In this document: in pieces, positions 24,726 to 64,000 of the stretch
Numbering within the stretch: position 1 is the stretch's first letter
Layout: each line of letters opens with the position of its first letter
Source of the DNA: Ylistrum balloti
Lineage: Eukaryota
Direction of reading: 5' to 3'
Assembly: GCF_031769215.1 (NCBI RefSeq)
Contig: NW_026782756.1
Location: forward strand, 186,001-250,000
DNA length: 64,000 bases
Program-made: the position numbers and the translations under genes
Notes under the pieces: generated by a model
Told to the model about the DNA's origin: nothing
The model's database searches: none
What the model saw: the letters and a program-made list of their open reading frames with translations, nothing else

Positions 24726-26273
24726 CACTAGTGGAACGTTAAAACTTGGAAATTGACTGTTTATTTATATTCAAAAAGTGCTCTGGACACTGAAAAGGTC
24801 TGCCATGCCTAAATCTCAACACAACGGAAAATTAATTTGGAAGATGGATAATGTTCCTATCAGCAAGATCCATTTCGAACACAGTGGTGATTATTGGATC
24901 ATGAATAAATTTTTCATCTGGATACAATATCTTGTCTTTATTTTCATTCATGTACTTAAGATTTTATTTCTGTCTAGCCATCTCTTCCTTTACCCAATAT
25001 CACATAATGGTTCGATGTTTGGTGATATTAGCCAACTTTCCTTATTCTTTAGCAAAACCTCTCCATAACTAGATATATTCAGTTTCAGTATCATAAGTCT
25101 GTATCCGAAACAACAGGAAACAACATGAATACACTGGTTGATATAAAACCATTTATTAACAAAACATGGCAACAGAACATCTACATAAGTGTTGGGTCTG
25201 TTTTATTTGTAAAAAAAAAAAATCATACAACTGTGTACCATTGATATCTTGCAATAAGCACACAAGTCAACACATTATCTTCATCTCAAAGTCAGGAATT
25301 GCGCTTATAAAGGGCTATTTAAGCAATGATATAGTGTTGCTAATAGTTTTGTTGAAACCACAATAAATGTGGGTGGGGTTATTACTAAGCATGTGCTTGT
25401 CACTGGATTTGTTCTGTAATGTCAGAAAAACGTCCAGCAAGTTACCACATTTGATAAAATTTAACAATCTTCAAGAATATACTGTTTTTGACAAGGCATT
25501 ACTCTTACACCTCTCATACCCCAACCTATTGAAATCACATTTAATCTGACTTGTAGCTTGTTGGATGCAGGAGAAATGTGACGGGTCCATAGAGGCATCA
25601 AATCTTGTTTATTTCTCAGAATTCACAAGCCAAAAGTATTAAAAAAAAACTTTCTTGTAGAATAATTAATCGGAAACTATCAACAAATTATGAAATATTG
25701 TGTAAACTTCCTGTATGCATTTTCATAATGTATTGAAGTTTTATGATATTGCTAACTACAAAATACAAAAAATATTTGGAATAGTTTATGACATGTAATT
25801 TTAACAATTTAGGCTATATAAATATAGCATTCACAGACACATAAATCACCCCTGACAATGGACATGTATTATCCAATTCAACTTGAATGACCGACACACA
25901 AATCTGCTGCTTTTCAAATACATGTTAGGAATTGTTAAAATCAGAGAATGTTTTATTGGTGGTTAGTCTGAACTATGTTAATTTTCTAGAAAGCGAAAAC
26001 AATCTTCTAGAAAATCCCATTCAGACTTATTGTTCCTTGCAGAAACTAAATGTAAAAATGGATGAGCCCACCTAAGCACAAGCATCTCAAATGTAGGTGG
26101 TAACCTAATTTTCATTAATTGAAATATGATTTTGAAATGTCAACCAAGCACGATTTGTGATCCATCGTTCATCACAAAATGACTGAATAAAGTCTGTATT
26201 GCAACATTTATTACAGAATATCTACATTTGTTGTGAGCATATCTTAAATCCTGTCTTTCGTTGGGAGATGGTA

Positions 26274-29200
26274 TCAGGATTTGGAGGCCCTACTCCTGCT
26301 TCTACTAGACCCTGCTGACTTTTTTCGGTCTTCCTTAGGACTTTTAGGTTTCCTCACAGGAGTCACTGCTGGTGTTTTCGGTTTCGTGTTGAATCTTGGA
26401 GGCTGGCCTGTAAGAGATACTTGACAAGATTAGTCTTCTACCATTACAATGACTTTGAATGAAATTAGCCGCAAAAAATTTGATTCAGACAAGAAAAAAA
26501 TCAGGCTAAGTGATTTCAAATGAATAGAAAATGGGCAAAGATCTTGATTTCAACATACTTTAGTAACTGATGCATGTTTGTTGAGTTAAATCTATAGTTA
26601 AATTTCGCTCCGTTGAGGATAGTATATATATATGTAACTGGAGTTTAAACTTGGCTAAAGGATATGTATTGCCTTTAAAACTCAAATAACTTTATAACTT
26701 TGATAAGCAGAATTTGATAGCAGCCAATAATGACTACAGAAGATTTATCTCACACTACATTACACAAATTACACCTGTTTTCCTCTTCGATACCTTAGTT
26801 TTTGTCATGATATGTTTGTTGGATGTACATGAAGCTAACAATGCTTTAGATGTTTGAAAGCACTGACTAAAATAAAATCATGAGTGATGAAAAAGTAAAG
26901 CATGCTTTGTAATTAAATGTTGTGTAATATAATTTTTCATGCAATATATATGTATTCAATGTCAGTATGTATTTCTGTAGTAAATCTCGATTGACATGAT
27001 CCACCTTTACCATTGTGACATGGAATGGATTTATCATGTTACCTTCTTGTTTACTGATCAAAACAACATTTGTATTAGCGTGTTGTTCTGTACCTATCTA
27101 CCAACTGTTTTTTCTATATAAATGAGAATTTTAGTAAAACACATTCTCCCATTCCTGCTTTGGTATCATAGTACTTGTATTATTGGGCTTTGTGTTTTGT
27201 CACTCTATAAAGTTAAAATTGTGTAAGAAAATGACAAAAGAATTATTAATTATCACTCTAGAATAAAATTGTTACATCAAATGCCATTGAAGAAATTCAC
27301 CATCCTATAACGTAAATGTTGTGTGTGGTGCCATTATCCACTATCATGGCGAGATCTTAAATTCACAGCAAACCTTATGGCAAACAAATCAATGAAGCAG
27401 TCAAATTTCACACCAAAACACAACTTATATCCATCAATATTTTATGAAAATGTCATCTTTATACTTTAAACAAAATTTAACTGTTTTCTGATGTGTTGAC
27501 ATGAACATGGAAGCAAATTGTGAAAAAAACATTACAAAGGAAATTACTCGTAATGTATGCATATAAAATTTCAAAACTAGATTTGTCCAGTTTGTTTGGA
27601 AGTGCTTAAACTTCTAAACCTCTCAATCAAAACCATGGTGTTTTACCTTGGTCATCAGATTTGAAAATTGGTTAATAATAGTGAAATGCTGAAATTGGTA
27701 GCCATTCATGATCCGAGTTACATTTATGTCATCAATAATCATTAGATTTTGTGATTAATTATTTGACAATTGTAACATACAGGACAATCTTTTTTCAGGG
27801 TGTTTTTCTTGCTATTTTTGACTAGGATATCAGCCTTGGATTTGACAACAATTTTTGTACTCAACCTCAGTCAACATATGTTTATCATTGTTACTGTATC
27901 AGTAATTGTTACAATTAGACTTCTGATTACTAATGTGAATGATAACTTTACTGAATACCCAAATTGTTAATATCACTCTTAAACATACTTTCCTGAATAC
28001 TGATTGTTAATCTGAAAATGTACCAATTAGAAATATACATGATCACATATCTGTGTATACATTATGACATAGAGAATATATATAGATGGCTACATAATAC
28101 ACATATTTCCCCAACAGTTTGTTATACACATACAATAAGATATACCATGTGTTTTGTATATATAATAGCCCTGGTCAATGTCGCCTGTTATCCAGAAACA
28201 AACCAGTGCATTTGCTTCTATTGTAGCAAAAACAAAAAACATCAACAAATTCTGTATAAATGGCTGTGAGATTATTGAAATACTTACATCTCCTCGTCAT
28301 CTACAAGTAGGTCTTAAAACGAACAACGATCATCAAAATTCATTGACACAGTCAAGCTAATAAATTCATACACTCCACCTGTTTTATAACAATGCGAAAT
28401 GGCCAAAGCTTAACTGAAATCTGATATTCTTGTGAACTTCATGCTCCCCAACTACATTTACCATGATCTATTTGAATTTTGTCAACCTGCCCAAAAGTGT
28501 AGACTTAAAATTCTCCTCTATAGATATATATAACTGTTAGAAATGGAAAGTGGGATGGGATTATGTGAGGGAAATCAAAGAAATCCTACTCCTCCAGTAA
28601 ACATTGATGTTCTTTAATGAAACTTAGTGTGGAGCATCCATATTCAGGAGGGCTTATTTTGCAAAAAAAAAAAAAAAAAAAAACATATGAGGATTAAAAT
28701 GGGAAATGAATTCTTGCAGATCTAGTCTATACCTTTCCTTAAATGTTGAGGGATGTCTGAGGGGAAGGAATTGTAATCAAATCAGTTTTTGATGGTAGAG
28801 GTTAACGTGGGTGACATATATTCATACAATTTCCAAAAGGTTAAGGAGGTTGCTAAGTTAGAAAATCAACTATGGTCATACAAGTCTCTAGAGCTTAAGG
28901 GGGTAGTCATATAGGTGACAAACTTTATCAGAACAAGTCCCTGAATGGTAAGTGGGTAGTCATATAGGTGACAAACTATATCAGAACAAGTCCCTGAATG
29001 GTAAGTGGGTTTCCCTGTGGGTGACAAAACTATATCAGAACAAGTCCCTGAATGTTACGGGGGTTTCCCTGTGGGTGACAAAACTATATCAGAACAAGTC
29101 CCTGAATGGTAAGTGGGTTTCCCTGTGGGTGACAAAACTATATCAGAACAAGTCCCTGAATGTTACGGGGGTTTCCCTGTGGGTGACAAAACTATATCAG

Positions 29201-32200
29201 AACAAGTCCCTGAATGTTACGGGGGTTTCCCTGTGGGTGAAAACTATATCAGAACAAGTCCCTGAATGTTACGGGGTTTCCCTGTGGGTGACAAACTATA
29301 TCAGAACAAGTCCCTGAATGTTACGGGGGTTTCCCTGTGGGTGACAAACTATATCAGATCAAGTCCCTGAATGTTACGGGGGTTTCCCTGTGGGTGACAA
29401 AACTATATCAGAACAAGTCCCTGAATGTTACGGGGTTTCCCTGTGGGTGACAAACTATATCAGAACAAGTCCCTGAATGTTACGGGGTTTCCCTGTGGGT
29501 GACAAACTATATTAGAACAAGTCCCTGAATGTTACGGGGGTTTCCTTGTGGGTGACAAACTATATCAGATCAAGTCCCTGAATGTTACGGGGGTTTCCCT
29601 GTGGGTGACAAAACTGTATCAGAACAAGTCCCTGAATGGTAAGTGGGTTTCCCTGTGGGTGACAAAACTATATCAGAACAAGTCCCTGAATGTTACGGGG
29701 GTTTCCCTGTGGGTGACAAACTATATCAGAACAAGTCCCTGAATGGTAAGTGGGTTTCCCTGTGGGTGACAAACTATATCAGAACAAGTCCCTGAATGTT
29801 ACGGGGGTTTCCCTGTGGGTGACAAACTATGTCAGAACAAAACCCTGAATGTTACGGGGTTTCCCTGTGGGTGACAAACTATATCAGAACAAGTCCCTGA
29901 ATGTTACCGGGTTTCCCTGTGGGTGACAAACTATATCAGAACAAGTCCCTGAATGTTACGGGGGTTTCCCTGTGGGTGACAAACTATATCAGATCAAGTC
30001 CCTGAATGTTACGGGGGTTTCCCTGTGGGTGACAAACTATGTCAGAACAAAACCCTGAATGTTACGGGGGTTTCCTTGTGGGTGACAATCTAAGCCAATA
30101 CAAGTCCTTGAAGGACAAGGGGGTTTCCCTGTGGGTGACAAACTATGTCAGAACAAAACCCTGAATGTTACGGGGGTTTCCCTGTGGGTGACAATCTAAG
30201 CCAATACAAGTCCTTGAAGGACAAGGGGGTCATCAAGATGGTGATAATTATGTCTATAAAAGTTCCTGATGATTGAGGGGGTTCCTGTTCACAGAGAGAG
30301 CTACCTAGTCTAATGATAGAGAGTGGTGGATTTACATACATTGTACACAGGGAAACATTCACCTTTGCATAAAACTTTTCATTTTGACCCAATGTCAAAT
30401 TCACCCTTACATATGAGTACATATAAACATGTTTCCACTGAAATTCAAACTTAGCTCAAATTTTATTTTATTGCAAAAAGGGTGAAACAGGTGAAAGATA
30501 AACTGCTGTGAACGTTTTCTTGTATTTAATAGACTAAAAATTAGGAGAAACATTGATTTGAGGAAGATAAACTTGATATCGATTAAACATTTGTAACAGA
30601 TAACATATATGTGTATACCTCATGGCTATGAATATTTCATTATATAGCACAAAATGCAGGAGAATGTTAAAACTTACAGGTTATGCAATAGTAGCTAGCT
30701 GAGATTACAGAGTATATAAGTCAATAAATATTGATAGCATCAAATTAAATACTGCAAAAACCCATATAATGTACACTGGGTTTTTTGGAGAAATTTAAAG
30801 TCCAAAGTGTGATTGCCAATATAACATAGGTAAATGATTACATTATCTATGTGAGATATTTCTGATTTCTTTCTTGTGGGTTTAAATTATGCAAAGATTA
30901 GGAGGGTTGTTCCTTTTCCAGACTTACCCATGTTAGCAGGACGAGGAATGCTTGTCTTCTCCAGCTTAAGTTCCAGATCCTCTTTCATGTCGTTTATGTT
31001 GTTTTTCATCTTATCCAACAATGCACTGGTATGTGCTTGTAAAACCTCTCGGATTATTTCTCCTACTTTCTACAATCAACAAAAAAAGTTAAAGGAATTA
31101 GTGAAAATTTGAAACTGCAATCCATTTTAACAGCATTTTCTTTTGAAACTTTATTCAAAGAGAAAAATTCAATATGATATTTACTTTCATATGCATGTCA
31201 AAAATTTTGACAGGATGCACTAGTACATGTATCATGGTAAGGCATAGTCCCTCATTCAGTGTAAGCTTTAATTTGTATGGAGTTCTTCCATAGTTCTGTT
31301 TCTATTTTGGTAGGCTTGATTATCATGACATGAAGTTGTGAATTCTTGAATGACAGCTGATTGAACAACTTTTTGTTTAGGTATTTCTATGGGGTTCCCG
31401 CCCCTCCCCACTCTTTCGTTTTGATTCGATAGATTGCAAGTTCTTTTTATTGTCTTTTATTTCTTTTTTTATTCTATCACTATTTTCATCTTTTCTGTAG
31501 ATCTCTTGAAGTTTCTGACTGATCTCTTTCCAACTTGTTACACTTTTTCACTTAAATATATATCACTGTTTCCACTATGTTATTTTGACTCAAGGAGTTT
31601 TGGAAGAGTTATTGCCCTTTGTTTTTTCCAGCTTTTGTTGATCTCTTGATATATCCCCTCACTTAGTTTACAACAGATATTGCATAAATTGGTAGATTTT
31701 ATTATAGTGACATGAAATTGTGCAGTTCTATTCATTGAGATACAATAATGTGTTTCTCTTCAGTAAGGGAAGGGCATATGTCGTTCTGCACTGCAATTTT
31801 CTTGTTAAAAGCAAAGAATCAGTTTAAACAAATCTTCCAAAAAGTTATTTTATTTCTACTCTACCTCTTTATTTAATGGCTGTTGTTCCTGACTTTCTGT
31901 AATTTTTTTCATCATCTGCTCTTTCTGTTTACCAGCTTCTGCAGCCTGAATCTCCCGCTTAGCAGCCCTCTGCTCCGCACAATCTCTCTCCCTTTGTTGT
32001 ACTGCTTCATACTTCTGATTATATTCCCAAATACGTTTTTCTTTGGCTGTCTTTAAGGCTTCTGAGCACGATGATGGAGGTGTATGAATCTCTAGTTGGA
32101 CATTGGGTACCCGACTCTCACGATCATGTGTAAATACATATTGGAATAATCTGTATTGCCTCATGAATGTCAAAAACACATACTCTGCATAAACTTTGTA

Positions 32201-34046
32201 ATTTCTTGTAGCTAAAACAAAGCCCAGTTCTTCTGATTTCTGTTTGAATATTTCCAATGTATCTGGAAGACTTTTACCTGGAATATTGAAGACGATATAT
32301 CAGAATCAAACAAAACAAAATAAAAATTAAAGAATTTATTTTTTAGCTATTGAAGTAAAGAATTTAGTAAATATCAGTTCAGCAATCAAACCTCTTTATG
32401 CTCTATTACTTGTAAAAGTAACATTTGATGTTGTGAAGGAATTAGTTTAACAGTCAATATGTCAGTCAGAATCGAACTGACCTACCTAAGATTTTACTGT
32501 TAAATTAGATAACAAACATCACATTACACACTAAAACATGTTATATTTACCAGCAAAGCTCAGTGTCATTGATGTTGACTGTAAATGGCGCAGAAGTGCA
32601 GTTTTATGATTTCATTAATACATTTTACACACTTTGCTATCCTATGCAGATCCTTGTTCAATTTTTACCTACCATGATCATTAAAAAGGAACAATCATTT
32701 AAATTTTGACAACTTTAACATAGCAATTCATAATAAAATGACAGGTGATCCATGTCATTAGGTTTGTATATTTATATAGTCTTAAGAGTAACAATGTCAT
32801 GTCAATGTAAATCTTAATCATCCTTGCATACCTATAGATTCCTGTAACAGTTGTTCGGAGAAGTCCACAGCTGCACACACCTGGTCCCAGGAAAAGCCCT
32901 TCTCAACAGCAAACATAAGGCACTCATAAAGGAAATCCAAATGGATATCATGGCGCATAGCCAGCTCTGCATTGAAGGGCTGCCATCCTAAGTGTTTTAG
33001 GAGACTTTGCTTCCCTTTTTCTTTCTGAAGAAAAATAAATAAATAGAAATGCCACATGGTTTAATATAATATAGCTTTGTATCTAGGAAGGATTTTTTTA
33101 AATAGTTATCCTATTTTAGTATAATTACATAAATGGCCATGGGAAGCATCAATCATACATATTTTTAACTTAACTAAAAGCAAACTACAATATTATGTCA
33201 ACACTTTTAATCTTAGAATAATTATCTAGCAATGTTTGCATCCCTCCTTGCAATGTGTTTGCCCACGAACACTGCATCAACCCAGGTTATATAGCCCCTC
33301 CAACAAAGCCTTTCACTCTCCTAGCATGTACTTGATTGGTGTACTGAATCAAATTTAGCAGGAAAGATTACTGTATCCCCACCGTGGGTCACACCTTTGA
33401 CCCCTGGCTTAGCTAAATGGAATTTCCCTCTAGCATGAAGCTAAAATGCTACCATACCTCTATATAAATTAAAACCTGTCACAAATAGAAAGTGTATAGT
33501 TATTGATATGATGAAACTGGGTATATTAAAAGCATGTATAAACGTTGTTTTTGTACAGTTTTACCGCTACTGAGAACCCATGCTATTTTTTCAACTATAT
33601 ATACAAACACATAACGGTCCGGAATCGATGTCGAGACAATACAACTACTTGGCAGAAAATATGACTACTACACAATTTTCCGATCTTTGGAAAAAAAAAT
33701 CAGAAAAAAACAGACAAAACAAAATTTGATATATTTCATACGACGACTTTCATTTTTCAATTATAAATGTAAATAATTGCATCAAATCAATATTTGGCGT
33801 AACGTAAATTTAGGTGTCATACACATTTTCTTCGATAGCACGATCAACTTTCGCTTTCGACGCATATGAATGTGGTTAACACGCATGATAAATTGTTTGG
33901 CACTAAATATATTCAGAGAAATAAAATAGAAGTTTCATTTTAAGATGAAGGTGATTTGTTTCAGCCAAAATGCTCATGCGAAGCAGTCAACATACCGAAA
34001 GACTTGCGACGTGCTGTGCAGCAGTTGTTGACAGAATCGCCGCCAT
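26274..34046 (-). CDS. C8orf74: C8orf74-family uncharacterised protein (5 exons, 310 aa)
   Basis: Exons 34046-33996, 33024-32832, 32277-31865, 31069-30928, 26407-26274; 933 nt, phases 0/1/0/1 consistent, ends TGA. Segments DIHLDFLYECLMFAVEKGFSWDQV and TFMRQYRLFQYVF...LEIHTPP resemble remembered human C8orf74 (ILLDTLYESIIFAVGKGFPWVEV; TFIRHYKLYQYVL...LEVCMPP). Confidence 0.85.
28900..30230. repeat. 53/54-bp minisatellite, about 25 copies, in C8orf74 intron 4
   Basis: Unit GTGGGTGACAAACTATATCAGAACAAGTCCCTGAATGTTACGGGGGTTTCCCT, with a variant carrying GGTAAGTGGG. Confidence 0.95.
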
Positions 34047-34348
34047 TTTGTTGCTACCAAGCTTTTAACGCGATTCTCGTAAAATCTCGACTTTGTTAAC
34101 TACATTATTTGCAAGATAATGCGAAACATAGATCATAGTATACTTCATATTTTCAACATGGCAAAAATGGAAATTTGAAAAAACAAAATTGACGTTATGA
34201 ATGGACAAATAACAGAAAATAATTGTTTGCCGATCTATTGTAAAACAAAATCACGTGATTAGAAACGAGATTAACCGCCTGCTTCATGTGGATTACTTTC
34301 CAGTAACGATAGTAAACAACAAGGAAATGTCATCCTACTTCAGACAAG
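34047..34348. promoter_or_regulatory. Putative bidirectional promoter of C8orf74 and the RP1-like gene, with candidate RP1-like exon 1 ending at 34348
   Basis: CpG-richer zone; perfect palindrome AATCACGTGATT (34249-34260, E-box); X-box-like and forkhead composite GTAACGATAGTAAACAA (34303-34319); donor-like AAG|GTAAAA at 34349. Confidence 0.5.
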
Positions 34349-35280
34349 GTAAAACTAAAGATAGAGATGCACTGCCAACCTCTAGATTAGTTCTATCGCG
34401 CGTGTTAACAGAATTTCTTCTTTAACTAATTCACATAATGTTGTCAGTGAACAAAAATGTGCATGCCCGCGAAACGCAATACATGTTGAACAAGTTCATT
34501 TTTCCAGATCTCGTTTTAAAAAGTGAGACACTGATGGTTGAATGTTTCCTTAAATGCGTAAATGCACTTGTTTTTCTTGTTTACCGAATAGCATAACGAT
34601 CTGTCTGTGTAAATCGTAAGGGGAATTAAGGTACCTGTTACTTGATATTAGGAATGCAAAAGAAGATGTACAATTATGCCATATTATATTTGTCCATTTT
34701 TAGCCGAATAAACAATGAATCATTGAACCAGCTTGGATTGATCTATGTTTCAATATCTTTCAATTATGGATTAATCCTGATTTTATGTATTTGAATTCTT
34801 AAAATCCTTTGACAAGTGTTCCATTCATCTACATCCTGTATAAAAAAAATTATAATTTTCCTGATGTTTAGCCTCGATTAATCAATGTCATGCTGTGGCC
34901 TCTGCTTTGGGTTATACATCATTGTTTATCGCAAAGATTGTCTACACCATTCAGTAGACGGTATTTGGATAATATCACTCCTTCTATGTGTATGTATTTG
35001 GGGGATAGTGATTCTAGAATTTGAAGCGTTTCACTGTTTGATTTATCCTTGAGATCATACTACATTTTTGTGGTGTGTTGTTTGACTCAATAGCTTGTAT
35101 CCTTTATAAATAAAGGACTCCATGTCTTTAGAGTCTAAATATGGTCATAATAAGGCTTTATATAAAGACATGAACATTAATAGGTAACCCTGTTATTATG
35201 AACTTCATGAAATGTCTATTATGAAGTTAATATGTTTGTTGATATACATTTAGGTGGATGACTGGAAGAGTTCCAAACTA

Positions 35281-38200
35281 ATGGCAGACACTGATACCAT
35301 GGACTCCAAAGGGAGGGAGGAGTTGGACCCTACCTCCCAGAATACAAAGGAGGAAAGGAAGCAGTTTCGAATAGTCAAACCAAAAACACGCAAGCTCAAA
35401 CCTTTGTTTGAATCAGATTCACAGAGTGTGGAGGAGGGAAGGAATCGTAAAGATCAAATTCATCACAGTCGCACATCTTTGACTGCCCCAACACAAGCAA
35501 AAATATGTTACTTCTACAAAGATGATGATTACACTTTCAAGTCATTGAAAGTAGCAGTCAGTGACCGTAAATACAAGAGATTTGATTCCCTCTTTAGTGA
35601 ATTAACAAAAAGAATGCCAGGTTTAAACTATGGTGTTAGAAGCATTTTCACACCACGAGGAAAAAACAGAGTTGAAAGTTTCGATCAGTTGACGAATGAG
35701 CAAAAATACATCTGTTCAACTAAGCGACATACACTGAAAGGTTTGGATTTAGACAGACTAGATAACCGTGAAATGTGGCACTCAACTCGTCCTCCAAGTG
35801 GACGTAGGGCATATAACCGTCTGGTGAGGGACTCTCGGTTACGAGAAAGTAAAGTGAGAAAAACAGGAAAACGAGACCCTCAGATGGCATATGCTTATTA
35901 TTATTCCATGCCTAAAAAAGTTACCATTATGAGGAATGGAGACCCAACAAATCGTCATGTCATGATATTTAACAGAAAGACTGCCCAGACATTTGACCAA
36001 GTGCGAGATGACATGGGAGATGTAGTGAAATGTTCAGCCATGAGAATTTACACCATTGATGGAAAGGAGGTTTGTATTTACTAAAGAACACTTATACAAA
36101 TCGATGCATTAACATCACTGAACAGGCAACTTAATTTTGATTTCTTAAACTGTTAGTGTTGGCAGAATATCAGATTTTCATGGGTAATACCTATAAATCA
36201 AAGTCCATGTTACATTTACTCTTTCATTGTTCCATAAATAAATGTGAGATTGCTAATAAAAGAATTGTTTACATACTCTAATGGATCCTGATGATGAGAT
36301 TTGTAACAATACTACTCAATATTTGCAGCAAATGATGCCCTTTTCCTCCTGATCATTATGGTTTGATAAATTTTAACAGATACGGAATTTACAGCAATTG
36401 ATGAACGGCCCAGATGTAATGATAGTAGGAGGTAAAGAACCATTCCGTCACATGGAGGGGGTTTCATTCACACCTCGACAGTCCAGACTCGCCTTTTCTC
36501 GTGGGGGCCTCAGCACTCGAGGAGGGTCTGACATGATTGCCAGGAAAATGCAAGAACGAAGAGAGAGATTAAAGAAAACTCGTAAGTATTATTTTAGAAT
36601 TTCAAAGTAAACAAATGAGTTGTACATTTGGGAGAATCAGGTTATGTAGATAGGTTCTTGGTGGTCTGTATTCAATTGGTATTCATCAAAATCAAAATGT
36701 AATATTATATCACTTTGCAAACCTCATGTTTCCTACTTTAAAATCTTTCACCTGCTAGTTGAGATCACCCTATTTCATCCCAAAGGGGTTGTAAGATTAA
36801 ATCAGTATTTTATCACTGCATTGGTGAATGGTGGGGACCCAATGGTACTGTATCTGTGACAACAGGTGATTTAAGAGTACCCAATAGTAATTGGTTAGCA
36901 TTTGTCTCCGTGGCAACATATGATCGAGTGCTGGACATTCACCAGCATTGTGGGTCTCTCATATGTGATGGCCAGCATGAACTGTAAAGACTTTGTAGAA
37001 AGAAGAGTATAAAGAGTTTGAAAATACAATGTATTGTATAACATTTAAGATTAATGTTCTGCAAAATATTTTGCCAACCACTTCAGTGTTAAGATTGAGC
37101 ACAAGTGAGAATTCACATACTCAAGATTACTTGACTTACTCTGACAACCAGACAACTGAATACATGTAGTTTATTTGACAAACCTGTTACCCCTCTATAT
37201 GTTAACAAATAACCATAACCATACATTGCCGTTTTCAGAGGGTAAATGGAAGGTCCTAGTCCAGACCAACAAACACCCGTCTACTGGAACACCAGCTCAA
37301 GTAACGCTGACTGTGTATGGACACAAGGGAAATTCTGGACCCATTGCTCTTGGAAATGGAGATGGCACCCAATTTAAAAGTGGGAACATGGATACATTTG
37401 ATGTATGTATGGGGACTACTATTGTTGGGGAAAAGCTAAAAGATTGATTGTTTGATCAGCCTTCCTCCAAGAGGTGATGATCAGTTTTTGTATATTTGGT
37501 AATCTTTGTGGAGGGTTTAATTTCACTTTGTTTGTGATCGTTAAGGATTGCAAATATGCAACATAGATTTTACTGTTTATCAAAAAATGCTGTCCTGTTT
37601 ATAGCTGAAGAATAAATTGCTTGAAATTTGATGTTGTGAAATATCTCTAACCTTGATAACTGAAAAATATCTAACAGTACTACAGTATAAAATTGATGGT
37701 ATTGTAAAATTGTTCCTGGGATCAATTCTTCTATTATATCAATAACACCTGAAAATTTGTATGTTGGGGTTATTCATGGAAACTCTTGATTTAGTCAAAT
37801 GAGCCATTATTGATTAAATAGATTAGTCAAACAATGCTTAGTCACATTATCATATTACAAATAGACCTGGTTTCCTTATTCAATCATCTAAAAAGGAATA
37901 TAAGTGGGAGGGAGAGTTTTTTCACTTAATTTCAGTAAAGCAAATGTGTTCTGTAAACATACACATTCAGTAACATATGTAAAAATGAACTCATTCATGT
38001 ACATCATTTTTATCACAATAAGGGAAAACATCAAAAGAAAAAAATGACTGAAATTTTTTCCACAGAAAATAACAATAGGCTATTCGTACTGAGTACGTTT
38101 AGCCTAAAAACCTTTTATAGAACTGCTACATAATGAAAGAAACAATAAATGTAGGATTCAATGAACTTTCATCCTTATTTGTTTTCTGCTGAGGAAGTTT

Positions 38201-41200
38201 TGGCAAGTAGAAAACCTGGATCATATCATTATTTCATTATGATTAATGAAGGTTTTATTATCCAAGGTTGTAGTACAACAGATGCTTCAGTGATTAATAC
38301 TTTTCAATAAAATTTATATGGAAGCACAGTCTTGGGCTTAACAGTGTCTAAAATTGGCTGAAAACATAAGGAGGGTTGAAATGGAAGAAGGAAGGAAAAA
38401 AGCAATACAATTATTTTGTTGGTCATATTTACAAATGGTCAGTTAAGTTACCTTCCTGAGACTTTTAAAGAACATGAATATAGATTATTGTGCTCAATGA
38501 CTGGAAAGTTGAATTGTTTAGCAAACATGTGAAATTATTAGTCTTTTGTTTTATTAGATATTTAAAGGTCAAAGCATGCAATGACATTTACTTATATAGC
38601 TGATGAAACATAAGATTCACTTCTTTTTATTGGGAAGTTTTAGATTTATCAAATATTTTCGCATAATTTTTAACATTTGCTATTTACACACGAGCTTCCT
38701 ACATAAATTATTTTTTATCCAAATTTAACAAAAAACTCCCACAATTGTAATAGAATGTGTGATCTCATTCTATAGGTGTCTGTAGGATCATAGTAGGAAT
38801 TATAATGGTATGTGCGACTTCATTCTACAGCTGCCTGTAGGATCATAGTAGGAATTATAATGGTATGTATGACCTCATTCTACAGCTGCCTGTAGGATCA
38901 TAGTAGGAATTGTAATAGAATGTGTGACCTCATTCTACAGGTGTCTGTAGGATCATAGTAGGAATTATAATGGTATGTACGACCTCATTCTACAGCTGCC
39001 TGTAGGATCATAGTAGGAATTGTAATAGAATGTGTGACCTCATTCTACAGCTGCCTGTAGGATCATAGTAGGAATTGTAATAGAATGTGTGACCTCATTC
39101 TATAGGTGTCTGTAGGATCATAGTAAGAATTATAATGGTATGTGCGACTTCATTCTATAGGTGTCTGTAGGATCATAGTAGGAATTGTAATAGAATGTGT
39201 GACCTCATTCTATAGGTGTCTGTAGGATCATAGTAAGAATTATAATGGTATGTGCGACTTCATTCTATAGGTGTCTGTAGGATCAATAGGAGAGATATAC
39301 AAGATTCGCATTGGACATGACAACTCTGGAGACAACCCAGGATGGCTCTGCGATGAGGTTAGTTACAGATATTAAATGTAAGATTAAAAAAAAACCAATA
39401 GAGTTTCTAGAGATTTTTTATATTTTTGTAATGTATTTTCTTTTCAATCTACTGTTTTGAAACTTAGTAAATAAGAAATTCAAAATTACTAGTAAACTTT
39501 GTCTTTTCAAGTATAGATTTGAAAAAATTATTAAATGAGATATATAATACAAAAAGACTTTAGGTGTGAACTAAAAAAATGAACGTGAAAATATTTGGTT
39601 GTAATAAATCTTGTATATAATGATAAATCCTTGTTCAATGTTTGATATCAGGTAAAAATGATGGACACACACAGTGGTGAAGAGCTGAGATTTGAGTGTC
39701 ACAGGTGGATGGCTCGAGACGAGGATGACATGGAGATCTGTCGAGAAATGCCTGCTGTGCGTAAGAGGGAGCCCATACTACCAGGTGTGTGGACAAATCT
39801 GTACCATACTGTCAAAAGTGGAAAGCTGTATAGGGCAAAAAGAGAATCAGATCACAGTTCAGTTTTACAGTTCCATCGGGGCATTGGAAAGTCATAAGGT
39901 CAAAGGTGAATTTAAAGTAAAACCTCATACACTAGAGGTCATTTATTTCTCTTTGAACCTGTAAAAGTAAGAGAGAAAAAAGGTCAAATCTCATATAATA
40001 TAGGGTATTCACGTCATCTAGGCAGGAGGAAAGGAAATGAATAGAAATGAAAAATTGACCAATTGAGACAGACTTAAAATTTTTACAACTTATTTTGACT
40101 GATACTGATATTTCTATTTTCCTTTTGTAGTAATACGATACGAAGTGTATATACACACAGGAAGTCTGTGGAATGCTGGGACAGATGCAAATGTGTACAT
40201 GACCATATATGGTGATCGAGGAGATACAGGTGTAAGGCAGCTGTTTGCTGAAGCCAAGACCTCAGTGTTTCGACAAGGCCAGGTAAGTGATTTGTAGACT
40301 AATAGACCCTATTTTATACTCTATCATGTGAAACAAATTATATCCATTTCTTTTTTAACTGGAAAATGGTATTTCATGATAACATCATAGATTTATTAAA
40401 TGACCCTTTGTAGTAGATGTTTTCATACTTTAAAACTTGGTGTTGCGTTGCAGGAGGATAGGTTTACAGTGGAGGCAGTCAGCCTTGGACGTCTAAAAAG
40501 GGTCATTATTGGCCACGACGGAACAGGCTCTGGTCAGTATTTAGGACTATAAATACATACATAGTAAAGGAAATAACATTAACCAGTTTTCAAAAAAACT
40601 TTTCATAATCAAGCAAAATGAAATACTGTAAAACTTAAATTTGTCGGCATTAATTTTTAGATATATTAGTAAATTAGGGAAAGTGCTGAGGCTTATGATT
40701 TTTTGCAGAAGATTGGTTGAAGAAATTCCCCCCCCCCCTATTTTTGTTGTTGTTTTCATCAAAGGTGCACAATACTTTATGTGTGTGTATTGTACTAAAA
40801 TTGTATATGTTTGCTATTAGTAGTTTGTAATGTTTTTTGGTATTTCTTGTGTTTAGGAAATGGCTGGTTTTTGGAGAAAGTTGTGATCAGGGAACCAAAT
40901 AGCAAGGCCACAGATGACTACTCCTTCTACTGTGGAAAGTAAGTCACACTTTTATGTAAAATAGAAATAATTTATATTGATATATGAATTAAACTTACCT
41001 GTGTACTACTAAGTAAAAGACATCTGTATAGTCTACTATAGATGAAGGCTGTTTATAACTTATATGAAATTTATATAGTAGTATTGTAGTAGAAGATACA
41101 GGCAATACTGACTACATATGTTTATCTTATCAGATATTTGGGGTAATTTTATTTTCATTTGTTTTGCTGATGTAGAAAGTCAATACAGAAATATATTAAA

Positions 41201-44200
41201 CATAAAAATAAAGTGACATGTGAAATATGTCTTACATTGCATTTTACTGAATGATAGTAATTTGCAATTGGAGTATTTAAAAACAAATAATTACGTAAAG
41301 AGTGAAAAAATAAAACTACAGGAAAGGAACATTTATATAGCCAATCATTTACCGTTATAATGAATATTTTGTATTCTGGAGTTATCAGATAAAGAGTTGT
41401 GTATATATATCCACTGTCAAGAGAAAAAATGGGTCACTATTGTGTAACCCAATTGGAATTGTTCAGGCTGTACAGAACTATTCCATGATAAACAAATACA
41501 CTTGTACCGTATGTTGGAAATATAACATGTAAAGATCACAACACAGTTTCAGAATTTCTTGTCAAATGTTAAACAATAAACCAATGATAAAACTCGTGTC
41601 ATTTTAACCCCTTCTGAATATCATAACATTTTCAGACCCTATTTTATGCAGAAACCCTGAAAGCAAATAATATTCAGCTGGTTAGTTTTTAATAACAGGT
41701 ACAACTAACTCCCTCAAACTACTTTCCATATATCCCCAGATCAGCCTCTCATGGTGTTGTTCTCAGGTTCAGTCAATCAAAAAATTCAACTGCTTACACA
41801 AAGCAATCAAAGATTCCTTGACAGTGCACATAATTCTCAGCCAAAAATATCATTTTTTCTTCCTTTACTTTCACATCAATGAGGCATTATTATATGTTAG
41901 AAAAAAAAACTGCTCAAAACTGGAACTCTTCTTCAGAACTGATTCAGTAGTATCCTTCATCTTAATCATGGTGTAAATGTTATGTTTTAGATTAGGTGAT
42001 CTTCCTGTTTGTACATTCTGGCTTACGTAAAATGTTTACCTTTCTGTTATGTTTTAGGTGGTTAGATGAAGGAGAAGATGATGGGAAAATTGTGAGAGAG
42101 CTGAAAGTTCAGGAAGAATACATGGATGACATACTAGAAAAACGAAATGTGAGTGAGATCAGCGACAAAGCAGAAGATGATGATTTAAATGTTTGGTTTG
42201 AGTATAAAATTGATTTGTAATATCTAGAATGACTGAATTTCTGTCTAGTATCTTATGTTTGTGAGTGCATTACATACTTCCTTAGAGTATCATAATATAG
42301 TGTATTTTTGTGATGTTTAGCTGTTTAGTACGTCAGCTCTGATATCGTAAACCATTAAATGGGTACATGTGATCTGAATATGTATAGAAATGTAAGTTAT
42401 TATGGGTATCTAATACTTCCAAATGGTTTTTCCTTTGAAATTCTTTGTAATTATAAACTGGTTATATTTAAACTTGTTATGAAGATATTATCTGTCTGCT
42501 TTAGACACTGCTTCATGCTGCAAACACTCACTTGTGACATGGTCAAACTTTGTTGTACATAAGCCATTCACTGTGCTGAGAAGTGAAACTAATTTTTGGC
42601 TTTAATCACCTAACTCATGCTATTTTTTTAATCAATTGATGTGAAAAAAAGTAAAATTAAAAACGATGTTATCCTAAATACACCATGATGTATCTTATCT
42701 ATACAATGTATTACATTAAGGTAGAGTGTCTCAAATGTCTAGGTAATCTTCCTGGAAGAGAAATTCAAGGTATTTTTTTTTTCACTTCGGAATTCTTGCC
42801 AATGTCTACACAAGGAGTCAAACAGTCTGTATTGTGAAGAACACTCTGTACTATACCGATCCTTAACATCTTTGATGTTAACAAGGATTTGTTCACTTCA
42901 CTTTACTACAGCAGTGAATGAACACTTTGCCTGTCATCTACTTTGTATCAATATGACAAAAATAACACCAAGTACATGTTTTAAATAGAAAAATACCTTA
43001 CAAGCTCTGTATACAAAGCATTGGGACTCTCTACTTGATAATCTGTTTTGCACTTTGTAATTTGTAATAAGTTGTTTAATGTGCTGTGAACACTACAATA
43101 GCCCTAATATGGTATGTTTTGCACTGTAAGCCTTTAATTGAGCATTGTACTCTGGAGCAATGTCATTTGTGATTTTTTTAGCACTTATGTTATTGTTGCT
43201 CTGTTATTAATCCACTAAGTGTTTTATATTAATCCTTCTGCTACTAGATGTAAATCATCTTGTGTCATCACATACAAATTGTCATCTAAGATTTCCTTTA
43301 CTTTTCTCCATTTCTGTATCTTTCTGTATCTCATCTTTTTTCATCTTAACAAAGCTTCATTTGTGTTTGCATCATTATGTGCCTTTGGGTCGCTCAAAGG
43401 ACGAAGATTATAACAATACATGTGATTTAACCTCTATGTACACTTGTCTTTGTCAGCACATTCTCAAAACATACTGCACATGCACTTCTTATAGAACCTT
43501 AGATAAATGAAAACAGGACAGAGTTTTGAGAATATTGAAATGTATCACAGTGGCTGTGGTTCTGTAACAAGTGTCTAGAAATGTATTGGTAATTGTTAAA
43601 CTACCAACATTCACTGTATATATTAGGAGTTGTCAATTTCACAATCTCCTCATGTTCTGTTTTGTAAGATCCACTTTAAGACAACATGATATGCATATAT
43701 TTCAATGTTTGCTAAATTGCAGCTCCTACAATATTTTTGACATTATAGATAGCAGTCTGTAGTCTTGTGAGGTTGTAACATTGATGATAATTCCTATTAT
43801 ATCATCAAACCATGTTATATGACCAAAGTTTAACTTTGAACTTTTGTACTTAACTACTAACTTTTGAGGTTATGTTAAAAATTTTGAATTGTAATGTTTC
43901 ACATTTATTTTGATAGTGATTTTATGGTACTGATGCATATTTGTTTATGATTCAATTGTAGCTAGTTGATATATGTAGGATGAATATTTACTTTGTGAGC
44001 ATGAGATGTATGATAAGGGGAGGTAACCCTACTGGGTCTTTCAGGGTTGCTTGGGTTTTTGCATAAAAAATGGTTTAGTCAACATTTCAGCTGCATGTCA
44101 ATTTTTGGCTTTGGTTGGGACAGACATACATATGTTAATACAGGCCTTGAAAGGCTTCGTCAAGATGCCTTTCTTGTGTCAAGGGCAGGTAACTCTTTTT

Positions 44201-47200
44201 AACGCAAAGAGCAAGTGACGTGAGAGTTTGTATTGCAGTGGGAGTATGAGATGTGGAAGTTCCAGAAAGACAGCAAGGTCAAATTCTACAGTTTAGTCAC
44301 ACACAAAGCTGTCCGTATAAGACCCAACCTCACAGTTGATGCGCTAGCTGATGATCAAGACAATGATGGTAAGTTTTGGAGATGTTTCAATTACTTCTTA
44401 GGTGTAGCACTGATGTTTCACTGTAATTATTTCAGTCTTAAGATGGTTGTATGTAACAAAAGGTGAATTTTGTGTTCCAGCAGTGTTCAATGTGGTTGTG
44501 AAGAAAAAATCTATGGTGAGAGCATTCAGTAGTGCAACAAAACCCAAGAACTTCCTAGCCATCGACAATGGCAAGATCACCATGCAGGTAATAATTTGTG
44601 TTGTCTATGTATGTAGTTATTGCCACATGTAGCCAATTCTTGATACAGTGAGATTTTGTTGAAACTGTAATCGATATAAACCAACATCTAATTCTGCAAC
44701 AGGTAGGCTGTTATGTTACTCAAGGAAGGCGTTAAAATATTGTCATAGTGTTGGAGTAGGAGAAGTTATTTAGCTGTGTGTTTAGATTATCTTGGGTAGA
44801 TTTCTACTGTGTTGAAGTGACAATTTCTGAATAAAATACATTTCATTGACAGGGTATGGGAGGACCATATTGTGAATTTCGGGTACGTGTCCAAAATGAC
44901 TGGTCAGTGATGCTGGAGTCTATTAAGAATCCTCTACAATTTGTCACATTTGGTGAAGATGGTCAACCCGATGATGTGCGAGGCATTCTTGATAAGGACC
45001 CGACTCGAAGATTCTTTGTTTACACTAAGGTAGGTTATTCTAGTAATCTTCATTATATGAAACACCCTGGATAAACAAATCAGACGTGAAGATTTTGTTT
45101 ACCCTTATGTTAGTGATATACTACAAGGTATTTTTTTGTGTAACCAAATAAATAACTGTTATATTTTATTCCTTGCACACAGGGAATGTTTCGTCACCGT
45201 GGTGTGATCATGCTGTGTTCCTCCTTTACACAAGCCATCACAATCAACCATGACTACACCATGCAGGCTACTGGAAAACAAAACAAAATGGCACAGTTCA
45301 GGGTTCACAAGATCTCTACTGGAGGTGTTCGCATGTTTGAGAGCATGATGAGCCCTGGAAAGTTTATACGCATGAAAGATGGCAAAATTGATTCATTGGT
45401 GAGTTATAGATGTATAATCAGATAAACTGGAAATGCTGCTATGAAATAACTATTATATAGTTGTCACCTCCATGATTGTTAACCATGAAGGATGAGATAA
45501 ACGACCTTGAACTTCAAGGATGGGAGAAATTGAAGAAATAAATTGAACTCGAGAAATGAGAGAAATATGTATGATTAAAACATTAATGCTTAACTATTGG
45601 CCATTTAGACTCAGAATAATGAATAATCCAACTGCCATTATTTGTTGACCTTGACATTGTTAAGATGTCACTGGGAATCCCTATTGCTATTAATACATGA
45701 ACTTTGACATGGCAGGGTGAGCGAGATGAGTACTCTCACTTCATAGTTGAAAAGCATCGTGACCTGGGATACGTATCACTCCAGTCAGGTACACAGCGTG
45801 GCTTGTATCTCGGGATGAAGCCAGATGGTCGTATATGGCCCACAGTGGATACAGGTGTCAACAATATCTGGTTGTACCCTTCAGTCATTGAATGTAAGTC
45901 ACTGGTTCTCTGTGATTATGTTACTTCTGCCATATATCTGGTATTTGACTAAACAGGATTTATTCTTAACTTTAAAATGTTCAGAACAGCTATACCTCTT
46001 AATGTCTCTCTGTTATCATACTGGAGACTTGTTGTACATTTATGTAATTCTGTACATACACGTTGTATTGGGACTGTTTTGGTAATATCAATTATACTGT
46101 CTTTTGGATAAATTTTATCTAAAATTTGTTTAAGAATTTTAACAAAACGTTGTATAAAGAAGGACCTGTTCTTGATTCTCATTCCTACCTGACAGTTGGT
46201 GTCCCGAAGATACGAAGCACAGAACAGGTTGAGGAGAATGCCATGATGCAAGCCAGACAAACTGACAGTGCCATGACTGTTGACTACACGCCCACTCCTA
46301 CTCCCCGTGCAGACTTTGCAGGTATTGTAAAAACATTGCTACGTATTCAGATTCCTTTTAAATATAGCTTAAATCAAAATCTGATAAACTGGTATTACAT
46401 ATAAGATGCCTTAATCACTTAATTACATTTGAAGTTGTAGTTTTTTGTGTATGTATGGCTAATGGAAATTAGAGGTTACTCAGTCAGTAAATGACATTAG
46501 CCATATCTATTGATACTTTTTAGTACATGTATCAGAAGGAACCAAGCCTGCTGTCAAAGGTAGGTTGTCTGGAGACTGGTTGTGAATGTGGTGGCTGTAC
46601 AAGGAAACTTGGTTGGCTGAAAACTTTATAAACTTGAAGCTTGATACTATCTGCAAATGCAGGATGGTCCATATTCTCCAAGTTTCCCTGTACATGTCAT
46701 TCAACGTTGTTGCAAGTCATCATAACATCATTGTTTGCTATTTTTGTGAATGTGATTGTTTTATAAAGTTAATTGTACGTCATTTGAATTCATTGTCACT
46801 TTGTTTGTGACTAATTGCTTGAATTGAATCTAACATATGACATTTTTTTTTGTTTTGAAACTAATACATGTCTATGTTTGGTCTTCACAAAATTTCATAA
46901 TGTTTTAGTAACTGGGTAAATGGTGTGAAATATATCTAGTTTAGGAAACTGAAGACTCTCCATTACAAATGAGTTAAACTAACGTTTAGCCCTCCTATGC
47001 TGCATGGCCATTAGTCTTCAAATGATATAATATGAATTTACTTGAATGTCTACTCTGTCAGTTTGCCACAGAAAACTTGTTGTGACTTACATTTACTCAG
47101 CTAACTTTGGTTAGGTTTGGTGTTAACATTCATTTTTTTCTGAAACATGTATATGCAAGATTTCATTTACATATATATCTGAACCCTGTTACCTCTATAT

Positions 47201-63990: not shown

Positions 63991-64000
63991 GTATGTCATC

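Follow-up and report, generated by a model that had tools for sequence, protein, structure and literature searches.

A head-to-head C8orf74 and DCX-PLAT gene pair in the scallop Ylistrum balloti, an old arrangement possibly shared with human RP1L1-C8orf74

Does the pairing of a C8orf74 homologue with a doublecortin (DCX) gene in a scallop reflect the same ancient neighbourhood as human RP1L1 and C8orf74, which we take to be divergently oriented? The question arises from the window, the whole stretch of 64,000 nucleotides of Ylistrum balloti DNA analysed here. A sequence-only reading had placed C8orf74 there head-to-head with an RP1-like DCX gene, proposed ancient bilaterian microsynteny held together by a shared promoter, and drawn C8orf74 into a ciliary programme. 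The reading we favour, at a probability of roughly 0.55, is an old divergent pair of C8orf74 and a DCX-PLAT gene with a compact control region shared in bivalves, occupying the same neighbourhood as human RP1L1-C8orf74.

By sequence comparison the minus-strand gene is the probable orthologue of human C8orf74, encoding a helical CLAMP-domain protein of ~300 aa. It is laid out as follows.

26274..34046, minus strand: C8orf74 homologue, five coding exons, ~310 aa, CLAMP (C1a-32 type) domain
34046-33996; ~33024-32830; 32278-31865, minus strand: exons 1-3, from tblastn
31069 to ~30923; ~26408-26277, with the stop at 26274-26276, minus strand: exons 4-5, from tblastn

By tblastn, the five exons match the Pecten maximus 'C8orf74 homolog' (P0001, 310 aa) from end to end; exon 1 begins at 34046, confirming the start given earlier, and exons 1 and 3 agree with the Y. 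balloti C8orf74 homolog (P0194) at 100% identity. A phmmer search with exon 3 returned 113 relatives, with 'C8orf74 homolog' names from cnidarians to vertebrates (Mollusca, Brachiopoda, Nemertea, Annelida, Echinodermata, Hemichordata, Cephalochordata, Vertebrata and Cnidaria), and reached the 'C8orf74 homolog' proteins of Latimeria, gar, Erpetoichthys and Ascaphus with matching positions. Pfam CLAMP (PF14769) is found in 23/23 full-length family members. The earlier assignment to the C8orf74 family is borne out by all of these searches.

Facing this gene is a plus-strand gene with two DCX domains, and the head-to-head arrangement is real, both gene structures being legible in the window.

35254..36069, plus strand: first coding exon of the DCX-PLAT gene, acceptor 35253, ATG ~35281, donor 36070
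36380..36581, plus strand: second coding exon, end of the second DCX domain and basic linker, phase 1
37239..37402, plus strand: first PLAT exon, Pfam PLAT E 2.7e-5
39646..63999, plus strand: further exons, Pfam PLAT and a weak FGF match, tblastn to Pecten and oyster
39646-39894, 40109-40294, 41996-42217, 47309-47566, 47643-47927, plus strand: PLAT halves, Pfam
51218-51535, 51618-51830, 60983-61240, 63793-63999, plus strand: PLAT halves, Pfam
44224-46401, plus strand: beta-trefoil-like exons of the same gene, weak FGF match

The first coding exon contains the N-terminal DCX domain and the greater part of the C-terminal one; its open reading frame (35254-36081) contains two Pfam DCX stretches (E 3.7e-21). 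The exon matches DCX and DCLK1 in the PDB and has orthologues in Pecten, oyster and Lingula. Its ATG is most likely at 35281, since a stop codon lies shortly before the corresponding Met in the Pecten orthologue; the distance to the ATG at 34046 is thus 1235 bp. The second coding exon, whose last base (36581) is exactly the end coordinate given by the sequence-only reading, is followed by a GTAAGT donor at 36582 and is matched by tblastn in Pecten, oyster and Lingula. It joins the first PLAT exon in frame across a gap of 657 bp, C + AG forming a Gln codon. The gene extends past the end of the window; NCBI gene models of relatives are 3833, 3451, 3077 and 5757 aa long and combine DCX with PLAT (and a faint FGF match). 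The RP1-like architecture proposed earlier does not survive, as the product is a DCX-DCX-PLAT(n)-beta-trefoil protein of 3000-5800 aa.

It is very improbable that the DCX and PLAT exons are two genes wrongly joined, which would leave C8orf74 beside a short RP1-like gene. An unspliced reading frame with exon 36380-36581 does meet a stop at 36608, but the donor at 36582 is strong and leads to an in-frame junction with a PLAT exon. Moreover, exon-by-exon tblastn recovers the identical order of DCX then PLAT exons in Pecten, oyster and Lingula, and four independent NCBI models join the two.

PLAT is a membrane- and lipid-binding domain and DCX a microtubule-binding domain. LOXHD1, a PLAT-repeat protein of hair-cell stereocilia, has a similarly long PLAT chain but is not known to carry DCX domains. 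A literature search for doublecortin domains linked with LOXHD1 or PLAT repeats found none.

The relationship of the DCX tandem to known families can be read from its spans and motifs. The stretch of the second DCX domain between R-N-G and L-Y spans 40 residues in 28/28 scorable DCX-PLAT orthologues and 44 in the three DCLK-type proteins. A published alignment, read by eye for the RP1 side, gives 40 for RP1/RP1L1 and 44 for DCX, DCLK and DCDC2. RP1 and the DCX-PLAT tandem have in common the motifs FYK.GD, TP[RK]GR (TPRGR) and, in the linker, W..[ST]RP. The tandem is N-terminal, with its two Pfam stretches and a PDB profile match to the DCX tandem of 115.7 bits, and it is without the DCX/DCLK-type states (spans of 46-47 and 44 residues, FYRNGD). 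Three orthologous fragments are automatically named 'retinitis pigmentosa 1' at JGI.

Two other placements of the gene were rejected. For the DCX/DCLK clade, DCX-PLAT orthologues reach 226 bits or more, the DCLK-type fragments P0191-P0193 106-124 bits, and both spans and motif differ. For the DCDC2 clade, the DCDC2 domain (2DNF) reaches just 18.3 bits (E 0.015) against the DCX-PLAT family profile, and the loop length differs. Profile scores, spans and motifs thus agree in leading away from DCDC2 and DCLK, the placements that would have told against the earlier claim. From the indel and motif signatures set against the published alignment, together with the automatic JGI names, we infer that the DCX-PLAT gene belongs to the RP1/RP1L1 clade.

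The label 'RP1-like' therefore holds for loop lengths and motifs and fails for architecture. RP1 proteins are ~2000 aa long. RP1 and RP1L1, which are photoreceptor axoneme proteins, open with a tandem of the same 40-residue span as DCX-PLAT but continue into long low-complexity tails with neither PLAT nor beta-trefoil; in the scallop gene globular regions follow the tandem, the PLAT and beta-trefoil-like exons continuing in frame.

The literature gives the human 8p23.1 order as PRSS55-RP1L1-C8orf74-SOX7-PINX1, which bears out the claimed adjacency of RP1L1 and C8orf74, and places RP1 beside SOX17; in gar, C8orf74 adjoins a SoxF gene. In human as in scallop, a C8orf74-family gene lies beside a gene opening with an RP1-type DCX tandem, although the scallop partner is far longer, with numerous PLAT domains and a beta-trefoil region; this comparison draws on the literature for the human locus, the 10-kb vertebrate C8orf74 flanks ending short of rp1l1. 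The most economical reading would be that vertebrate RP1 and RP1L1 descend from a DCX-PLAT-type gene and that the scallop and human RP1L1-C8orf74 loci are one neighbourhood, an equivalence for which support is only indirect.

The likeness to the human locus could instead be coincidental, DCX-PLAT being an invertebrate-type DCX family without direct vertebrate descendant, or a relative of LOXHD1 through its PLAT domains, and RP1L1 having reached C8orf74 independently. Such an explanation would suit the different architectures, the restriction of the RP1/RP1L1 group to vertebrates in a 2006 survey, and the gar locus, where the 10 kb upstream of C8orf74 contain no DCX exon. We consider it unlikely, as DCX-PLAT has two RP1-specific indel states and several RP1-type motifs, invertebrates carry separate DCLK-type genes (P0191, P0193), the DCDC2 score is very low, and the same neighbour would hardly have been gained twice. 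Descent from a DCX-PLAT-type gene, our preferred reading, suggests an origin for the vertebrate-only RP1/RP1L1 family in a DCX-PLAT giant, and microtubule- and membrane-binding modules in one protein would fit the supposed photoreceptor role of RP1.

How old is the pair? C8orf74 and the DCX-PLAT gene are head-to-head in Pecten (1.39 kb, 1388 bp), oyster (1.42 kb, 1418 bp) and Lingula (7.3 kb). In the hemichordate Ptychodera the two genes are adjacent on the same strand, and the pairing is absent in the starfish Patiria, the crinoid Antedon and Nematostella. The 10-kb C8orf74 flanks of abalone (Haliotis), Owenia, amphioxus and gar gave no gene call and no DCX/PLAT tblastn match. An arrangement common to oyster and brachiopod, and loosely to the acorn worm, is old; from these sequence comparisons the divergent pair dates at least to the mollusc-brachiopod ancestor and is probably of bilaterian age. 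The earlier proposal of bilaterian microsynteny is partly supported: scallops, oyster and Lingula show the pairing and Ptychodera the adjacency, and Patiria, Antedon and Nematostella show neither.

Irimia and colleagues are said to have described, in Genome Research in 2012, conserved ancient microsyntenic pairs in metazoans. In such pairs unrelated neighbours are kept across phyla, often divergently and at short spacing. C8orf74/DCX-PLAT resembles them, although its conservation is patchy, and is a modest addition to that known class.

What might have kept the two genes together is best considered with the DNA between them.

34048..34062, minus strand: half X-box motif GCTTGGTAGCAACAA (C8orf74 sense), directly 5' of the ATG, in promoter or 5'UTR
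34048-34056, minus strand: putative RFX X-box right half-site, core TAGCAACAA, within GCTTGGTAGCAACAA
34251..34269, plus strand: bivalve-invariant block TCACGTGATTAGAAACGAG, palindromic E-box and flank, ~205 bp from the C8orf74 ATG
~34223-34348, plus strand: conserved non-coding block, putative non-coding first DCX-PLAT exon, on conservation and an AG/GTA donor

The 15-mer GCTTGGTAGCAACAA does not vary between the window, Pecten and oyster; in Haliotis, Lingula, Patiria, Ptychodera and Nematostella its core TAGCAACAA is found 1-20 bp upstream of the C8orf74 start codon. The half X-box thus occurs at the C8orf74 ATG in at least six independent lineages, against a 7-mer background of 0.117 per kb. 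It is missing upstream of C8orf74 in amphioxus, Owenia and Antedon; the gar upstream sequence reads GTTGCC-CCT-AGAAAC. The right half, TAGCAAC(AA), is well conserved across species and the left half is degenerate; the bivalve intergenic DNA contains no full palindromic X-box with up to one mismatch. Validated X-boxes end in ATAGCAAC (PMC3245922), and that of DYX1C1 is CCCTAGCAACC (PMC5024701). A TAGCAAC motif near the start codon, conserved across species, likewise marks RFX-regulated X-box genes of cilia, such as DYX1C1 and DCDC2 (PMC5024701) and, in C. elegans, the xbx/bbs genes (PMC3245922), whereas at C8orf74 only the right half is well conserved. The ACAAA portion before the ATG could be Kozak context.

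The E-box block TCACGTGATTAGAAACGAG is invariant in the three-way alignment, at offsets from the C8orf74 ATG of 205 (window), 207 (Pecten) and 206 bp (oyster), and was not found in Lingula intergenic DNA. The surrounding block at 34223-34348 is ~92% identical to Pecten maximus, against ~50-60% in the neighbouring intergenic DNA, and the AG/GTA donor that ends it is conserved with Pecten. Lying ~180-300 bp from the C8orf74 start codon, this block is a candidate for a non-coding first exon of the DCX-PLAT gene. The spacing of 0.3-1.2 kb suggested earlier fits both the 1235 bp between start codons and a putative exon starting ~180 bp away.

In bivalves, then, we propose a compact control region common to both genes, with the half X-box abutting the C8orf74 ATG and the E-box block and putative first exon ~200 bp off. 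It would activate both genes in cells with cilia or flagella, and their joint activation would help to retain the pair. The shared promoter of the earlier reading cannot be what holds the pair together everywhere, since the Ptychodera genes lie on one strand.

A competing explanation is passive linkage, in which the two are neighbours by descent and slow rearrangement without functional tie, each motif serving its own gene. Consistent with this are the differing orientation in Ptychodera, the 7.3-kb spacing in Lingula, the loss of the pair in two echinoderms and Nematostella while TAGCAACAA stays at C8orf74 in Patiria and Nematostella, and the neighbour on the other side of C8orf74, a WD40 gene of 320-360 aa (EIF3I-like) that is equally conserved in Pecten, oyster and Lingula. 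Against it, the distance between start codons is near constant in scallops and oyster (1235, 1388 and 1418 bp) and two invariant motifs sit at equal offsets in bivalves. For two given genes, chance adjacency is of the order of 1 in 10,000 per genome; slow rearrangement or constraint is therefore required for them to have stayed together repeatedly. We regard purely passive linkage as doubtful. Outside the head-to-head arrangement C8orf74 mostly kept its own X-box: the motif persists in Ptychodera, where the arrangement differs, and, among the species that lost the pair, in Nematostella and the echinoderm Patiria; in the echinoderm Antedon it is gone.

A pointer to C8orf74 function comes from its relatives of known structure. 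Against the PDB, the family profile matches FAP114 best (E 6.4e-19, 71.6 bits, nearly full length), then mouse CFAP119 (E 1.8e-14, 56.9 bits) and FAP119 (E 7.3e-7, 32 bits); beyond these there is no match below E 0.29. The preference for FAP114 over CFAP119 is modest, and coiled coil accounts for part of the excess. An AF2 model of the protein (pLDDT 84.9) was searched with Foldseek, and all matches with E < 0.1 are Chlamydomonas or mouse central-apparatus chains. C8orf74 shares with FAP114, FAP119 and mouse CFAP119 (PDB 7N6G, 7SQC, 9IJJ) the CLAMP domain, a helical fold and similar length, although identity is ~18-21%. All three are subunits of the C1a/C1e projections in the central apparatus of motile cilia. 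The mouse sperm model has a CFAP119 chain and no C8orf74 chain, and the central-apparatus literature equates both FAP114 and FAP119 with CCDC189/CFAP119, leaving C8orf74 unmentioned. With both algal subunits assigned to CFAP119 alone, an additional animal paralogue may have escaped notice. The ciliary role of C8orf74 claimed earlier is well supported by homology, predicted fold and promoter motif, and not by the synteny from which it had been argued.

More tentatively, and with odds below even, the ancestral DCX-DCX-PLATn-beta-trefoil giant would have been an axoneme-to-membrane linker of which RP1/RP1L1 are truncated forms. C8orf74 would have stood beside its 5' end since the bilaterian ancestor, as the FAP114 (C1a-34) orthologue and a pan-metazoan RFX target, the pair being a relic motile-cilium expression unit.

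Human C8orf74 has been called uncharacterised in the literature. Its homologies would give it a concrete place, as a CLAMP protein of the FAP114/CFAP119 kind in the C1a/C1e projections of the motile-cilium central apparatus, and its RFX-type promoter motif is conserved from sea anemone to hemichordate. The human gene lies within 8p23.1, a region that recurs in GWAS.

The two genes of the head-to-head pair are almost certainly real and divergently arranged. In AT-rich DNA with many introns (about 33% G+C), five minus-strand exons found by tblastn span all of Pecten maximus protein P0001 ('uncharacterized protein C8orf74 homolog', 310 aa). Exons 1 and 3 are 100% identical to P0194, the Ylistrum balloti counterpart, so the DNA belongs to this scallop or to one very closely related. 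The Pecten locus and the window are collinear for at least 22 kb. On the plus strand an ORF at 35254-36081 encodes two DCX domains (Pfam E 3.7e-21; PDB matches to doublecortin and DCLK1). Its start codon is most likely 35281, because Pecten has a stop codon just upstream of the equivalent Met; from there to the C8orf74 ATG is 1235 bp. The sequence-only reading had placed the pair at 26274-36581, and both its start spacing and these outer coordinates, which are exact exon ends, proved accurate. The DCX gene, however, extends past the window end and is far larger than that interval. Both gene models were searched exon by exon.

Features of the two genes (C8orf74 exons from tblastn with P0001)
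34046-33996, minus strand: C8orf74 exon 1
about 33024-32830, minus strand: C8orf74 exon 2
32278-31865, minus strand: C8orf74 exon 3
31069 to about 30923, minus strand: C8orf74 exon 4
about 26408-26277, minus strand: C8orf74 exon 5, stop codon 26274-26276
35254-36069, plus strand: DCX-PLAT coding exon, ending at a GT donor
36380-36581, plus strand: exon completing the second DCX domain, phase 1 end, GTAAGT donor
from 37239, plus strand: exon opening a PLAT domain, frame restored
39.6, 40.1, 42.0, 47.3-47.9, 51.2-51.8, 61.0 and 63.8 kb, plus strand: later PLAT halves
44.2-46.4 kb, plus strand: beta-trefoil-like exons, weak FGF match

The minus gene had been called a C8orf74 orthologue, and this is accepted on sequence comparison; its separation from the paralogous CFAP119 lineage is provisional. 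Searched with exon 3 (phmmer, 1.84 billion representatives), the family is small, at 113 proteins; full-length members have 280-350 aa and align at equivalent positions, and a Pfam CLAMP match occurs in all 23 that were aligned. Source databases use the name 'C8orf74 homolog' in bivalves, gastropods, cephalopods, Lingula, nemerteans, echinoderms and Ptychodera, and also in amphioxus, coelacanth, gar, bichirs, a frog and Nematostella. A word search with the family alignment, aimed at CFAP119 and FAP114, yielded pectinids and octopus only. Two longer models carry a C8orf74-like segment and are possibly fusions with neighbours: P0018 (746 aa) and P0022 (531 aa, Acipenser, flagged UNVERIFIED_CONTAM). 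The last C8orf74 intron holds a 53-bp minisatellite (28914-30198, 24 copies, 92% matches) that creates long spurious ORFs.

The exon order of the plus gene is identical in Pecten, oyster and Lingula (tblastn), and the NCBI models of Pecten, oyster, Lingula and Ptychodera (3833, 3451, 3077 and 5757 aa) have DCX followed by PLAT domains and a faint or weak FGF match. The partner of C8orf74 is therefore a DCX-DCX-PLAT(n)-beta-trefoil giant without RP1 architecture. From its domain families, one would predict binding of axonemal microtubules by the DCX part and of membranes by the PLAT part; our literature search found no paper linking doublecortin domains to PLAT or LOXHD1. Six tandem arrays lie in its introns (38743-39285, 47911-49593, 50558-51009, 51858-52186, 58500-59965 and 62336-63701; periods 55/165, 25, 17/51, 20/60, 38/381 and 22 bp).

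The description of the plus gene as RP1-like thus fails for its architecture, but it probably holds for the DCX tandem. Membership of the DCDC2 or DCLK clade was the alternative. About 38 exon-sized orthologues form a tight group scoring at least 226 bits on the DCX-PLAT profile, on which invertebrate DCLK-type fragments and skate DCLK1a reach 106-124 bits. Against PDB, whose contents include no RP1 structure, the profile gives 115.7 bits for doublecortin and 18.3 for a DCDC2 domain. Word searches with the DCX exon and a 16-sequence alignment returned exon-sized invertebrate fragments and DCLK-type sequences, under a length filter that leaves out proteins of about 2000 aa; three orthologous fragments had been automatically named 'retinitis pigmentosa 1' by JGI. 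In the Clustal alignment of 67 tandem-DCX proteins of Reiner et al. 2006 (supplement 3), two loops in the second DCX domain are at their shortest in RP1 and RP1L1 and in no other group. The span from R-N-G to L-Y there is 40 residues in mouse RP1 and 44 in DCX, DCLK and DCDC2; it is 40 in 28 of 28 scorable DCX-PLAT orthologues and 44 in three of three DCLK-type sequences. RP1 and DCX-PLAT also share an FYK.GD start (FYRNGD or YRNGD elsewhere), TP[RK]GR[HD] (against TIDG.. or TPRTGH) and the linker motif W..[ST]RP, the RP1 side of span and motifs being read by eye from the mouse and chicken rows, as a comparison and not a phylogeny. Reiner et al. 2006 report RP1/RP1L1 in vertebrates only. By these sequence characters, the DCX-PLAT tandem is probably sister or ancestor of RP1/RP1L1, and not of DCDC2 or DCLK type.

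The neighbour survey covered 10-kb flanks around orthologous C8orf74 proteins retrieved by exact look-up; the gene ranges in it are apparently CDS-based.

Genes upstream of C8orf74 in other species
Pecten maximus: DCX-PLAT, head-to-head, 1388 bp
Magallana gigas: DCX-PLAT, head-to-head, 1418 bp
Lingula anatina: DCX-PLAT, head-to-head, 7317 bp
Ptychodera flava: DCX-PLAT (5757 aa), same strand, 6.2 kb between its 3' end and the start of C8orf74
Patiria miniata: MFS transporter, without a DCX gene
Antedon mediterranea: HADHA-like gene, without a DCX gene
Nematostella: TMEM234, head-to-head

For Haliotis, Owenia, Branchiostoma and gar, the 10 kb upstream of C8orf74 contain neither a gene call nor a DCX/PLAT tblastn match. 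Under random gene order a given pair of genes would sit side by side in about one of 10,000 genomes, so the adjacency in Lophotrochozoa and a hemichordate is best read as inheritance. The pairing very probably goes back at least to the common ancestor of molluscs and brachiopods. It is lost in some lineages and changes strand in Ptychodera, and any constraint on it is therefore not absolute.

Human RP1L1 and C8orf74 we take to be divergently transcribed; the human gene order used in the comparison is the published one. In gar, a SoxF gene follows C8orf74 on the opposite strand, which agrees with the human order PRSS55-RP1L1-C8orf74-SOX7-PINX1 in the literature. RP1 adjoins SOX17, in keeping with an RP1-like/SoxF neighbourhood predating the vertebrate genome duplications. 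The sequence-only reading had dated the pair to the protostome-deuterostome ancestor. The lophotrochozoan pairs and the Ptychodera adjacency speak for that age, and the patchy distribution against it. The pair is real and conserved, and an ancient origin is plausible but hinges on the unproven orthology of the DCX partner. We give a probability of about 0.55 that this pair and the vertebrate RP1L1-C8orf74 neighbourhood are homologous, which would make it bilaterian in age.

The genes downstream of C8orf74, at 18547-24950, are a plus-strand EIF3I-like WD40 gene (about 20.0-24.9 kb) and the minus-strand NDUFB7 (18.5-18.9 kb); an ELOVL-like gene occupies 2.6-6.9 kb. Pecten, oyster and Lingula all keep the WD40 neighbour, and in Lingula TMEM234 follows it. 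As TMEM234 is the head-to-head partner in Nematostella, this hints at an older block of DCX-PLAT, C8orf74, EIF3I and TMEM234.

Between the two genes, window and Pecten DNA are poorly conserved apart from two blocks.

Conserved intergenic features
50 bp upstream of the C8orf74 ATG: conserved block, window against Pecten
about 34223-34348 (about 125 bp): conserved block, about 92% identical to Pecten, ending in a conserved AG|GTA
34048-34062: element TTGTTGCTACCAAGC, invariant in window, Pecten and oyster
34251-34269: element TCACGTGATTAGAAACGAG, invariant in window, Pecten and oyster

The second block, judged from its sequence, is probably a first exon of the DCX-PLAT gene that is non-coding, which would leave no more than about 200 bp between the two transcription units. 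The E-box of the 34251-34269 element lies 205, 207 and 206 bp from the C8orf74 ATG in window, Pecten and oyster. The palindrome in it, ATCACGTGAT, which does not vary among the bivalves, is an E-box of the USF/MITF/TFE type.

In the sense direction of C8orf74, the element at 34048-34062 ends in TAGCAACAA, and the ATG comes next; this 9-mer has the form of an RFX-type half X-box. It recurs 1-20 bp before the C8orf74 start codon in Haliotis, Lingula (both haplotigs), Patiria and Ptychodera, and directly before the MAPSL start of the older 281-aa Nematostella model (P0087), a start that aligns with other orthologues. Gar carries GTTGCC-CCT-AGAAAC some 40 bp before the ATG. Against a 7-mer background of 0.117 per kb (both strands, 274 kb of loci), sense-strand copies confined to 25 bp in five or more independent lineages are beyond what chance can produce. 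Experimentally validated X-boxes (che-13, bbs-1 and others) end in ...ATAGCAAC (PMC3245922), and the human DYX1C1 X-box is CCCTAGCAACC (PMC5024701). Conservation is good in the right half of the X-box-like motif only, part of which overlaps the likely Kozak context. The half motif was not found upstream of the ATG in amphioxus, Owenia or Antedon, and a scan of four intergenic regions for full X-boxes (GTNRCC-N1-3-RGYAAC, at most one mismatch) gave none in bivalves and one chance-level match in Lingula. Near-X-box sequences in the conserved block, around AGTAACGATAGTAAAC and at the TAGAAAC beside the E-box, were rejected as too distant from the consensus; this TAGAAAC is similar to the variant half X-box found in gar. 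A shared promoter had been proposed to hold the genes together; tentatively, a common RFX/E-box control region would help to do so in Lophotrochozoa.

Ptychodera has a second TAGCAACAA (L008:3947, in its C8orf74 locus) about 200 bp past the DCX-PLAT coding end, in the 6.2-kb spacer. P0150, the Nematostella model now in use (350 aa), carries 69 extra N-terminal residues without counterpart in other orthologues (L011:10001-10210); the shorter P0087 is probably right, because TTAGCAACAAA directly precedes its MAPSL start.

The functional placement of C8orf74, called not characterised in a GWAS paper, is the most useful outcome of the analysis. Its family profile matches Chlamydomonas FAP114 over nearly the full length (E 6.4e-19), mouse CFAP119 over the domain only (E 1.8e-14) and Chlamydomonas FAP119 (E 7.3e-7) in PDB, with no fourth protein below E 0.29. 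FAP114 and FAP119 are both treated as CCDC189/CFAP119 in reviews and in the mouse structure paper, none of which mentions C8orf74; the searched portions of papers mentioning C8orf74 state no ciliary function. The suggestion of the sequence-only reading that C8orf74 takes part in an axonemal programme is well supported by this homology and the promoter motif. The AlphaFold2 model of the Pecten protein is entirely helical (pLDDT 84.9), and its Foldseek matches at E < 0.1 are all chains of central-apparatus structures, from Chlamydomonas C1 (7SQC, 7N6G) or mouse sperm (9IJJ). What the evidence indicates is a place in the central apparatus of motile cilia, and not specifically RP1-type functions.
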